NCBI GenBank assembly: GCA_001949185.1
Contig: BDGG01000002.1
Coordinates: 8,298,448-8,362,447, forward strand
DNA length: 64,000 nucleotides
Direction: 5' to 3'
DNA from: Ramazzottius varieornatus
Lineage: Eukaryota > Animalia > Tardigrada
Shown here: in pieces, positions 5,466-46,557 of the stretch
Numbering within the stretch: the first letter of the stretch is position 1
Layout of the letters: every line of letters starts with the position of its first letter
Notes under the pieces: generated by a model
Database searches by the model: none
What the model was told of the DNA's origin: nothing
What the model saw: the letters and a program-made list of their open reading frames with translations, nothing else
Program-made: the position numbers and the translations under genes

Positions 5466-7889
5466 ATGGCGTTCAGTTTCTTCCACCCGAAAACGGCTTC
5501 GGCGACACGGCGTTTGTTGCAGCAATGGAAGCAGGGAGACGAAGATGAAAAATGGGCCGAGAAGGCTATCGAAGCCTTTGTCAAGAAGCTGAAGAACAAG
5601 AAAGGAGCCATGGAAAAGCTGGATCATGCCATCCAGAATGGACGACAGTATCCGGACGAAAGTTACGAATGTGTCACTATTCCTCGGTCGCAAGATGGAC
5701 GCCTGCAGGTCTGTTTCGTTTCGCATTTATTCCACCTCTTTCTTCTGAAAAATCATATATCATAGTAGCTGAGATGTGCTGTACAGAGTAGGTACAGTAA
5801 GCTAATCGAATCCGATCATCAAGGTATCACGCCAAAAATCTTGAACTGGCTGATATTTCAAATACAGTCTTTCACGTGGTTACGAATGGCAGCTCGCACT
5901 CTTATGAATTAATTTTGTGCTCCAGGTATCCCACCGGAAAGGTCTTCCCCATGTTATTGCCTGTCGAGTTTGGAGGTGGCCAGACCTGCAAAGCCATCAT
6001 GAGCTGAAAGCCAGACCGTATTGCCAGTTCCCCTTCGAATCGACCAACAACAAAGAAGTCTGCATCAACCCTTATCACTATCAACGCATCGAGAGTCAAG
6101 GTAAACAGAGCCCTTTACACTTACACGTGCCATCACATAACAATCTTCTTCCAACCATACTCTACTCACCCTCCGCACCCACATTTTTTGCCATAGCTGC
6201 GATCAATTTACACTTTCATGTTTCTGAAACTTTTGGGCGTGAACCCATGTCAAACAAAAACTAGATATGTATAATTATATAAATATTGGTTTTAACTGGT
6301 TTAAATTGGTTTTACACGCGCAGGTGAATTCAGGATTACAATGTCATGGAATGCTATGCATTTTACGTCATATCAATGAGATTTTGATGTGCTAAGCAGA
6401 GGCGAGAAAAGTGGGCTTCGCGTATAGTCCTTACAGTATGAACTTGAGTTTCAATGTGCGTGTTTCTTAGTGCTGCCACCTGTGCTGGTTCCTCGTTTCT
6501 GCGAGTACAGCACCAGTGCGGGACAGCCTATCCTGTCGCCCTTCCATCAGATGGACGACCTCTCTATGCCGGCCAACTTTACTGTAGATTCTGAACAAGG
6601 CAGCTTCAGCCCGGACATGGGCGGAAACCGGCGAATATTCAGTCCACATCCTTCCATGGCTTCTCAACCCAGCAGCCCCTTCGTCAACAGTCCTTACCGT
6701 AAGCTAGAATATAATTTTCCCAACCTTCTGCCAGATGTCCCGTCCTCGTATGACATGATTCTGGTATGAAGAACGTCAGCTAAACGTGCCTGTTTGATTC
6801 CAGCGCCGTCACCTCCGTACAGTCCACGCATGGGTGGCGACCACCTGGCCAACCATGCTCGTGTCAACAACGCTATGGAGATGGACGAAGGTGAACCCAC
6901 TAGTCCTGTAGACTCTCTGGCCGCAATGAGCTTGAACGGTTCGTACCGAAAATATTTTGTAAGAATCAATCGCTCATGATCTGATGGTCGTACGTTGCAG
7001 ATAACACAGCGACGGTGGTGCCACTCGAAGAGCCAGCCAAGTGGTGCACCGTCCAGTACTTTGAGCTGAACAGCCGCGTTGGTGAACCTTTCCACGTCCT
7101 TACTCCAGGCAACGTTGGCTTCACCATCGACGGCTTCACTGATCCCAGCGACTACGGCAAGCGCTTCTCCCTCGGACAACTCTCCAATATCCACCGCAAC
7201 TCTGTCATTGAGAATACTCGCAAGTTCATCGGCAAAGGTATCTTACCACTAATTCTCTTTGCAGATTCGGAAGTGAACAAATAATTTGAAGCAGATCGTT
7301 CTCCCAAGTGGCGTACACTATCAGCCAATAACACTGCCAAGGTGCGCACTTGGGGAAAGCAAACTTATGCAATTTTCAAAGTGGCGCACAGTTCTAGCCA
7401 GTAGTATCGAGAAAGCGCACCACTTGCGAAAACGATCAGGTTCATTCGTTTGTCCACGTCTCAACATTCTGCTTTATCACAGGTGTGCACATTTGTTACG
7501 TGGGCGGGGAAGTTTACGCTCAGTGCCTCAGCTCATCGGCCATCTTCATCCAGAGTAAAGAAAGCAACGCTCGTCATGGACTGCATCCGGCCACCATTAT
7601 CAAGCTGAAGACGGGCAACAGTCAGCGCATCTTCAGCATGGAGAAGTTCGCGCGTCTCCTGCAACAAGCTGCTCTGTCGCCCGACGCCTACGAGCAAGTC
7701 TATGCCCTGCAGAATATGTGCATTATCCGTATGAGCTTCGTCAAGGGTTGGGGTGCCGAGTATAATCGACAGGACGTGACGGGAACACCCTGCTGGATCG
7801 AAATGAAGATGGCGGGTCCGCTGGAGTGGCTGGACAAAACACTGACTCAATTGACTCCTCCACCCAACTATGTTGGCTCTCAGTCTTGA
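5466..7889 (+). CDS. Mad: BMP-type receptor-regulated Smad (Mad/Smad1/5/8-like); exons 5466-5708, 5926-6100, 6471-6698, 6804-6938, 7001-7237, 7483-7889
   Basis: MH1 motifs [14 protein letters not shown] and [38 protein letters not shown]2 motifs TIDGFTDPS and [30 protein letters not shown] introns with consistent phases. Confidence 0.95.
7305..7426. repeat. Intronic palindromic cluster 1 (2 units) in Smad intron 7238-7482
   Basis: CAAGTGGCGTAC-N25-GTGCG(-)CACTTG ... AAAGTGGCGCAC-N25-GCGCACCACTTG. Confidence 0.85.
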
Positions 7890-8461
7890 TGGAGGGGTAT
7901 CTCTTTTTTACGGGTATTTTACTTCTCATTTTGAAGAAACCAAACTTATCGAACTGTTTTTCCAGTTTTTTCTATCTGAAGTGTGTTGTTTTTAACATCT
8001 TTACTTCCTTCGTACCACTATGGTACATGCGTTATTGTCAACAGCATAAAATATTTTGTAACGTGGAGTGAATATTTTGAGTTTTTCTGCTTGTGGCGTA
8101 TTTCGTTCTCTTTTTGTTTTATACTTTTGTATTTTTACCGGAATTTTCTGTAGTGAACCTGAACTGTAGTTCCGTCACGAGACCTGGCTTGGTAGCGTTT
8201 TGACAACTTATGGCATCGGACTCGAAGATGGGCAAAAGCTGGGAGCGTGGCATTTGGAAGGGAAGGTGTGATCAACGAAATTTAGAAAGGATAGAAAAAT
8301 AATTAAAGGGAAAGCATGCACTTCGTTGCAGATCGTACAATTTGTTTTGTGAAGGTGAGGCCCATAAAATTGAAAATGATAAAAGCATCGCGTTCGGTGA
8401 TCTTCACTATGGGGGAAAGGTTCTTCATTATGCTAGCAGCTAAAGCGTTTGCCTCGACTGT

Positions 8462-46100: not shown

Positions 46101-46557
46101 CAGATTATGCTTCCAAATAGCTCACTGTTCCTACCGATACCATCGAAGAGATGCGTCACTTGGGAAAATAGTCTTGTTGAACTTGCTGAGCTTCCAATTG
46201 TGCTCAAACAAGTGCATCTTAACAGATACAATGAGCTTCCGAGTGCCCAACGTCTGGCCTCTGGAGACGCTGCACAACGCCCTCAGTTTCAAAAAGCTGG
46301 ACGTCTTTTTCCGGGCCATCTTGGAGGGCAGCAGACCGGCCGGGTCGACGGGTGCGCCGGTCGAGCACAGAAAGTCCATCGACGCTTCCGCACCCTCGGT
46401 CACCTTCTCTGGCGAACTGTCCGAGTCGTGGACCATGGACCATGTCAGTGACAGGCCGTCGGACACGAGTCAACTTCAGCCGGCCATCTCGGTGAACGTC
46501 CCTCCACTTCCGGCTGCATCTTCACCGGCAAAGAATGATCATCAGAGCTCGAAATGA
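40154..46557 (+). CDS. PPIP5K: Inositol hexakisphosphate/diphosphoinositol-pentakisphosphate kinase (PPIP5K/Vip1), many exons
   Basis: Kinase domain [80 protein letters not shown]. Phosphatase domain [67 protein letters not shown]. Start codon less certain. Confidence 0.95.
41911..42031. repeat. Intronic palindromic cluster 14 (2 units) in PPIP5K
   Basis: CAATGTGGTACAC-N25-GTGCGCCACTTG-N23-CAAGTGACGCAC-N24-GTGCGCCACTCT. Confidence 0.88.
44399..44614. repeat. Intronic palindromic cluster 15 (3 units, includes a near-perfect 79-bp tandem duplication) in PPIP5K
   Basis: GGCATTCGAACYGTACAAGATGTTCGCCCTTCAAGTGGCGCGCGTTACCGGTTGGTAACAATGGCAGTGTGCGCCACTT occurs twice (1 mismatch), then CAGGTGGCGCAC-N~10-GTACGCCCCTTG. 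Confidence 0.92.
45600..45727. repeat. Intronic palindromic cluster 16 (2 units) in PPIP5K
   Basis: TTAGTGGCGCAC-N25-GTGCGCCACTCG ... GCAGTGGCGCAC-N25-TTGCGCCACTTG. Confidence 0.88.
46043..46162. repeat. Intronic palindromic cluster 17 (2 units) in PPIP5K
   Basis: CAAGTGGCGCAC-N24-GTGCGCCACTTG-N~23-CAAATAGCTCAC-N25-ATGCGTCACTTG. Confidence 0.88.

Follow-up and report, generated by a model that had tools for sequence, protein, structure and literature searches.

A palindromic miniature inverted-repeat element dispersed through the genome of the tardigrade Ramazzottius varieornatus, with a pair of slowly decaying 12-bp boxes

Introduction

The genome of the tardigrade Ramazzottius varieornatus carries a short palindromic element in many copies. 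The element is described here from a stretch of 64,000 nucleotides (contig BDGG01000002.1 of assembly GCA_001949185.1, positions 8,298,448 to 8,362,447 of the forward strand), called the window, in which it lies at 17 places, four of them in introns of a gene that looks like a PPIP5K/Vip1 kinase (Table 1). Each unit contains a 12-bp arm, or box, CAAGTGGCGCAC, and the inverse of this box, separated by a spacer of 25 bp. The element is a miniature inverted-repeat transposable element (MITE) by its anatomy: it is short and non-coding, has terminal inverted repeats and is dispersed in high copy number. The boxes and the distance between them have decayed more slowly than the rest of the sequence, which points to thousands of retained putative protein-binding sites.

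Table 1. Copies of the palindromic element in the window, and the gene that hosts four of them
Feature	Position	Strand	Evidence and details
Doublet	7258..7496	.	nhmmer, 138 bits; arms 7305, 7338/7342, 7378, 7415
Doublet	8885..9095	.	arms 8919, 8955, 8989, 9026
Singlet, second arm with 1-bp deletion	11421..11489	.	arm search and nhmmer
Doublet, first spacer shortened	16793..16981	.	nhmmer
Singlet	24463..24574	.	nhmmer
Singlet	25631..25720	.	nhmmer
Doublet, 33-nt linker class	29449..29649	.	nhmmer
Doublet, spacers both in orientation B	30229..30461	.	nhmmer
Doublet, spacers both in orientation A	31561..31767	.	nhmmer
Doublet, best kept in the window; terminal inverted repeats present at both ends (GCTCGGCAAAC... 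/ ...GTTTGCCCGAGC)	35401..35619	.	nhmmer, 167 bits
Doublet, unit 1 with internal deletion	37346..37557	.	nhmmer
Doublet, 11-nt linker, spacer orientations B then A	37986..38177	.	nhmmer
Weak, part-decayed unit (first listed as a cluster at 38937)	39008..39058	.	nhmmer, 17 bits; arms 39009/39045
Doublet in intron 41816-42092 of the PPIP5K-like gene	41902..42086	.	nhmmer, RNA contigs
3-unit array with 79-bp duplication, in intron 44254-44720	44382..44667	.	nhmmer, RNA contigs
Doublet in intron 45520-45805	45547..45769	.	nhmmer, RNA contigs
Doublet in intron 45972-46224	46022..46219	.	nhmmer, RNA contigs
Host gene, PPIP5K/Vip1-like	41666..46780	+	RNA contig joints; Pfam His_Phos_2 on single exons

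Copies in the window and in the genome

The motif pairs were first listed at 17 clusters by a sequence-only reading of the window, and the element is present at every one of them. At a limit of one mismatch, the window contains 39 occurrences of the arm CAAGTGGCGCAC or its inverse where 0.26 are expected, and none of 100 shuffled sequences reaches this number. Allowing two mismatches gives 58 occurrences, in which + and - orientations alternate at offsets of 36-37 bp. A profile of the element applied to the window with nhmmer recovers all 17 places, as 18 loci because the array at 44382-44667 is split in two; no element is found by nhmmer in positions 1-7,000 or 47,000-64,000 of the window. 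No element is touched by the assembly gap at 11889-11938, which begins ~400 bp past the copy closest to it (11421-11489) and is without bearing on the finding of the repeat.

The expectation of the sequence-only reading that the motif pairs are genome-wide holds in the whole assembly (55.8 Mb in 200 contigs, 47% G+C), where 15,025 arms with at most one mismatch are found against 173 for the reversed arm used as control. The gapped scan that it had proposed returns 452 perfect arm-N20..30-inverse-arm units and none for a control pair, and the gap is exactly N25 in 371 of the 452. Matches to the element are dispersed over many contigs; among the matches listed, perfect units are spread over contig 1, between 1.4 kb and 9.07 Mb, and occur on contigs 2 and 3 as well. 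Locally the distribution is patchy, with 71 loci found by profile in a contiguous 264 kb made up of the window and the 200 kb upstream of it.

The fine tests described below rest on a sample of 314 kb of this one genome, with ~100 units. A mean of 1.75 mismatches per arm in an unbiased sample, combined with the 15,025 arms counted, gives an estimate of ~31,000 arms, ~16,000 units and ~11,000-13,000 loci genome-wide. At a Poisson rate of 1.75 mismatches per box, ~3% of pairs should be perfect. The observed 452 perfect pairs are close to this prediction, and their number is compatible with a single Poisson class.

Anatomy of the element

Alignment of the clusters with their flanks shows that the repeat runs ~37 bp beyond each outer arm. 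The two outer flanks are reverse complements of each other over these ~37 bp, with a consensus of roughly GGGAGCTCGGCAAACAAACTCGACAAGATCGTTTTCC followed by the arm. The monomer, ~123 bp long, is composed of (i) a 37-bp terminal inverted repeat, (ii) the arm, (iii) the 25-bp spacer, (iv) the inverse arm and (v) the inverted repeat again; the unit of ~95 bp given by the sequence-only reading is too short. The monomer is almost fully palindromic, and a direction is given to it only by the middle of the spacer, ...CAGCCAATAACA.... The element has neither an open reading frame nor any coding capacity, and a scan of the whole window against Rfam matched no family. In its inverted repeats, absence of coding sequence, dispersal and high copy number it conforms to the proposal that the repeat is derived from a MITE.

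Similarity between copies stops at GGGAG. The adjoining positions are A/T-rich (A-A/W-W-T), the ends reading approximately (A)(A)(W)T followed directly by GGGAG. Evidence of target duplication in these flanks is slight: one copy (L033) is a clean case with AAAT on both sides, where the flanks share only 4 bp, and across 30 copies 4-mer matching of the flanks stands at 1.67, a non-significant excess over the null value of 1.45 (p = 0.1), a palindromic AATT-like target being indistinguishable from a longer inverted repeat. No 8-bp duplication is seen in this small and old sample, the 8-mer flank match being 2.07 against a null of 2.15.

Units also occur in tandem. What appears as a linker between two units is the truncated, inner part of the terminal flank. 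Perfect junctions from the whole genome fall into linker classes of ~23 and ~33 nt, corresponding to periods of ~72 and ~82 bp; the 22-24 bp reported earlier describes the first class and misses the second. Dimers are ~195-205 bp long and are chiefly direct tandem repeats rather than full palindromes, with 17 in the same orientation and 4 in opposite orientations. Doublets had been taken for the majority form, but the 314-kb sample consists mostly of singlets (62, against 20 doublets and two occurrences of a 3-unit array, counting units with both arms recognisable). The array at 44399-44559 contains a local 79-bp tandem duplication whose copies are 98% identical, which shows that, in a family that is itself old, arrays can still lengthen through recent duplication on the spot.

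Conservation of the boxes and of their spacing

Copies that are detected by their arms necessarily show good arms. For this reason the arm columns of the profile were masked, and training and search were kept to different parts of the region, each part serving in turn for both. In the 50 units obtained in this way the two arms are 87% and 84% identical to the consensus, whereas the spacer reaches 68% and the flanks 63-65%. Masked detection favours the spacer and flank values, so the contrast between box and spacer is conservative, and the far better conservation of the arms that had been noticed by eye survives the removal of arm ascertainment. After Jukes-Cantor correction, the arms have changed ~2.5-3 times less than the rest of the element.

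The conserved segment has well-defined limits. Identity is 0.84-0.92 at box positions A2-A11 and falls to 0.74 at the two edge positions, and conservation breaks off abruptly where the box ends, even though the ancestral palindrome extended into both flank and spacer. An explanation by base composition or by CpG content was rejected: C8 and G9 of the CpG stand at 0.90 and 0.89, and the A and T positions of the box, at 0.84-0.88, are kept like its G and C positions. In the spacer, likewise, G/C and A/T positions decay alike.

The distance between the boxes is kept as well. The gap between arms is 25 bp in 71 of 88 pairs and 24 bp in a further 13. For a landmark in the flank, ~30 bp away, the share of cases at the modal distance is as low as 51% (Fisher p = 8e-4 against the box spacing), and linkers in the sample vary from 11 to 62 bp, unlike the near-fixed spacer.

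Lineage and age of the copies

The family is old as judged from its sequence divergence. When the best-kept copy of the window (35401..35619) is compared with the rest of the genome, its best matches reach no more than 70-82% identity. The variance of pairwise identity between spacers equals that of a column-shuffle null, with no outlier pairs except the local tandem duplication, so the spacers look like the products of independent decay from one ancestor, star-like and without subfamilies.

The boxes decay in a Poisson-like manner, with a variance of 1.83 mismatches around the mean of 1.75, and independently between the two boxes of a unit. The identity of a box is unrelated to the decay of its flank (rho = -0.10) or spacer.

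Intronic location and host gene

Four copies were placed with respect to splice sites by mapping transcript contigs of four RNA-type runs on window positions 41500-47400. The contigs define 14 GT..AG introns on the + strand of the host gene, which looks like a PPIP5K/Vip1 kinase: its exons were compared with Pfam individually, and single exons match histidine phosphatase branch 2. Ten of the introns measure 62-132 bp and the four that bear the element 253-467 bp, which bears out, where it was checked, the intronic location assigned to the copies from the first. Between the element and the splice sites of these four introns lie 23-128 bp. In the introns of 277, 286 and 253 bp some ~51-77 bp lie outside the element, the size of an ordinary intron, so that the copies look like inserts into pre-existing short introns; intron 44254-44720 has a more complex make-up and ~180 bp of further sequence outside the element. 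The direction of the spacer is independent of the direction of the gene.

A decayed copy was rejected for the only other long intron of the gene, the 312-bp intron 42806-43117, which has no match to the family profile and holds a different inverted repeat (42952-43040, with 27-nt arms that are 81% complementary and 35 nt apart), which probably represents a second MITE-like family. In the 132-bp intron 43559-43690 there is a faint trace of the right flank of the element and one box (E = 0.3), possibly a copy shrunk by internal deletion. Within exons at 41785-46679, two of the RNA-type runs (X11 and X16) depart from the reference sequence at ~20 places in ~3.3 kb and two others (X5 and X7) do not, which suggests that a second strain or a close relative is present among the public runs.

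A predicted two-part protein-binding site

What is retained in the element is the sequence of each box and the distance between the two. Such sequence-specific conservation at fixed spacing is best fitted by a bivalent or dimeric DNA-binding protein, the agent already put forward in the sequence-only reading, and we infer selection as the cause of the slow decay, a protein as its agent and a transposase as the origin of the site. In the proposed course of events, an ancient, non-coding, palindromic MITE would have carried the motif pairs as internal boxes, each originally a binding site of the element's transposase. The family would have spread once, long ago, to roughly 11,000-13,000 loci (~31,000 boxes), and its survivors would now occupy introns and further non-coding sequence in gene-rich stretches, many of them as head-to-tail dimers. 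Spacers and flanks would then have decayed independently in each copy, to ~65% identity with the consensus, with the boxes retained at ~85-90% and the 25-bp distance retained too, and the box would now be held in place by purifying selection as half of a two-part site for a dimeric or two-module protein, which may itself derive from the transposase. The balance of the evidence leans, if not by much, towards boxes that began as internal sites of the transposase and are now held by purifying selection as a predicted bipartite protein site.

A wider claim is put forward only tentatively, and the weight of judgement is against it: that more than 10,000 mostly intronic bipartite sites, each of two inverted 12-bp boxes 25 bp apart, are all under weak purifying selection and are bound by a predicted tardigrade protein, possibly a domesticated transposase-type module. 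They would make up a genome-wide chromatin or transcription-coupled system that arose from a single MITE burst and has no described counterpart in other animals.

Several points weigh against selection in place. The Poisson-like decay of the boxes embraces all copies, with no split into kept and abandoned copies that would mark a functional subset, and it is unusual for more than 10,000 sites, most of them intronic, to be under one uniform, weak constraint. For flank and linker columns the variance of pairwise identity is double that of the null, which indicates some heterogeneity of age or lineage, and the subfamily test would miss very many small source lineages. The case for selection is drawn from a single genome. 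Neither an autonomous partner nor a candidate binding protein has been found, the sole check for a partner being that of transposase remnants at 52-60 kb of the window, which have no boxes nearby.

Some of these points are what would be expected if the boxes mattered for mobility only. In that case they would be the transposase sites of a long-mobile family, whose source copies drifted elsewhere in their sequence; only copies with intact boxes would have jumped, and the resident copies would decay neutrally. The P elements provide a precedent for internal sites set back from the ends (PMC7776569). A Poisson-like box decay that is uncorrelated with the decay of flank and spacer is predicted by this model, the excess variance in the flank columns agrees with it, and the best genome matches, at 74-82%, have the identity expected of siblings that have each undergone ~14% neutral decay. 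A long-lived source population should, however, give a broad, tree-like spread, and the spacers are star-like. Copies with mutated boxes stay in the genome, so that selection for mobility alone cannot keep residents intact, and the scarcity of mutated-box residents is left unexplained. The length of the spacer, which the model also needs for mobility, is kept in resident copies. Restriction of the boxes to a role in mobility is thus unlikely, with an appreciable residual chance.

A smaller chance is left to pairing between the arms, either in pre-mRNA or as a DNA cruciform, in which the G+C-rich 12-bp stem would fold the insert of ~120-200 nt away so that a short intron could still be spliced. 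Folding places the arms in pairs in 77 of 94 units, with a mean minimum free energy of -18.5 kcal/mol against -9.6 kcal/mol for shuffles; the copies that were checked are intronic, in a gene whose ordinary introns are only 62-132 nt long, and the indifference of such a stem to orientation matches what is observed. Maintained pairing should nevertheless leave compensatory changes, and there are none in arms, spacers or flanks: complementarity of the arms is 0.809 within units and 0.807 between units, and spacers and flanks are likewise equal in the two comparisons. Units in + strand genes show no preference for wobble pairs in the sense strand, with 32 mismatches of the sense G:U type and 26 of the antisense type (p = 0.5). 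A loop has no need of a fixed 25 nt, yet the length is fixed, and a stem would not be expected to lose its conservation sharply at the box edges when the ancestral palindrome extended further. The lack of covariation, of strand-biased wobble and of spacer subfamilies disfavours the hairpin that the sequence-only reading had offered as an alternative; what is favoured is a constraint on box sequence and box spacing rather than on structure.

The boxes might also be preserved without selection, by locally rare mutation, by biased gene conversion or by repair in which one arm serves as hairpin template for the other. A reduction of decay that is uniform and Poisson-like in all copies agrees with such processes. 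Correction between arms predicts covariation, which is not seen; GC-biased conversion would lose the A and T positions of the box, which are well kept; and ectopic conversion needs a longer stretch than 12 bp and would have made the flanks uniform too. These processes are accordingly very improbable as the cause. Least probable of all is an introner-like element that creates the introns that hold it: the host introns contain little beyond the element and splice signals, GTAAG occurs in the decayed terminus of one copy (L015, position 95480 of the joined stretch) and elements lie between very long open reading frames of a large + strand gene, but in the four mapped introns the element stops 23-128 bp short of the GT and the AG, the ~51-77 bp that remain in three of them are about the length of an ordinary intron, and no conserved splice sites are found at the element ends.

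From the sequence-only interpretation, a MITE-derived repeat with an arm pair better kept than its surroundings stands; the hairpin and the likeness to pairing centres are not supported, and its account of the size and architecture of the unit was incomplete.

Comparison with known systems

The closest documented case is that of the CERP2/CELE2 MITEs of Caenorhabditis, through whose m1m2 motif pairs the transposase-related THAP-domain factor HIM-17 acts (Carelli et al. 2022, PMC9757741). The co-opted copies serve as germline promoters, with binding established by chromatin immunoprecipitation (PMC9757741). In both cases a small palindromic MITE has spread genome-wide and its short motif pair has outlived the rest of the element, and the transposase-related binder of the nematodes is, by analogy, the type of agent predicted here. 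The tardigrade element differs in that the checked copies are intronic, its two boxes are a single motif in inverted orientation at a fixed 25 bp, and the protection looks uniform over copies.

Ordinary MITEs of the Tourist or Stowaway type share with the element a length of 120-200 bp, inverted repeats over nearly the whole length, a lack of coding sequence and, with more than 10,000 copies, a tendency to lie in genes and introns and at A/T-rich targets. In the tardigrade element, unlike these, the best-kept part is an internal pair of 12-bp boxes and not the termini.

Like P elements, it has a short internal site placed some way in from the end, behind a terminal repeat. The target duplications of P elements are 8 bp long, whereas the flanks here suggest a 4-bp AATT-like target at most; the element is not filed under P elements because its flanks show no 8-bp duplication. 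The THAP sites of P elements are TAAGTGTA, TAAGTGGA and TAAGGGTT (PMC3698922, PMC7776569), and 10-bp internal sites lie 9 and 21 bp inside their 31-bp repeats (PMC7776569). The AAGTGG of the box agrees with 6 of the 8 letters of the 3' P site TAAGTGGA (PMC3698922; THAP-type TAAGTGKA / TAAGGGTT), a six-letter match that gives a weak pointer towards a transposase-derived site and could be due to chance.

The resemblance to bacterial repetitive extragenic palindromic (REP) sequences, to their doublets in bacterial interspersed mosaic elements (BIMEs) and to the REP doublets forming hairpins (REPINs) mobilised by RAYT lies in short imperfect palindromes, doublets, thousands of copies and a better-kept core. 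These bacterial sequences are intergenic and are recognised as single-strand hairpins by an HUH enzyme. The tardigrade element has a eukaryotic host, intronic copies, terminal inverted repeats and no sign of structural constraint, so the analogy drawn by the sequence-only reading holds for appearance and fails for maintained pairing. A second analogy, with the pairing-centre motifs bound by HIM-8 and ZIM proteins in C. elegans, extends to a 12-bp motif in very many copies and no further: those motifs lie near one chromosome end and outside MITEs, whereas the copies of the element, among the matches listed, are spread along contigs and are not clustered at one end.

The literature searched for the motif and for tardigrade MITEs contains nothing on this element, in agreement with its first designation as undescribed. 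Metagenome collections, which are without tardigrade genomes, were scanned too. The exact pair is absent from them, and 10-bp cores occur in 7 contigs, all unrelated (six of high G+C and probably bacterial, one with a different palindrome). Four of the high-G+C, probably bacterial contigs (L040, L041, L043 and L044) carry GAAGTGGCGCAY-N25-TGCGCCACTTC, with the same core and spacing amid unrelated flanks; this likeness is taken as a coincidence.

Other features around the copies

In the 200 kb upstream of the window, positions 89,000-165,000 of the joined stretch (L014-L022; ~8,187,400-8,263,400 of contig 2) contain very long open reading frames on the + strand, of up to 1,554 amino acids. These have no match in Pfam, the short gaps between them mostly hold the element, and the run of frames is probably one or a few giant genes.

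At the other end, 47-64 kb of the window, the palindromic element is absent and two transposase remnants are present: a pogo/Tc5-like one (DDE_1, Transp_Tc5_C) at 52105-52653 on the + strand and a mariner/Mos1-like one (HTH_48 and Transposase_1) at 59224-60288 on the - strand. Absence from transposon-rich stretches is common for MITEs.

Implications

Even if the boxes should prove not to be under selection, the family would still be the main shaper of the long introns of this genome, and its description would be useful for repeat annotation. If they are under selection, one transposon burst would have given a compact genome tens of thousands of identical two-part sites within its genes. Such wiring of regulation or chromatin by a mobile element would be a natural example on a large scale, from a phylum in which gene regulation has scarcely been studied.

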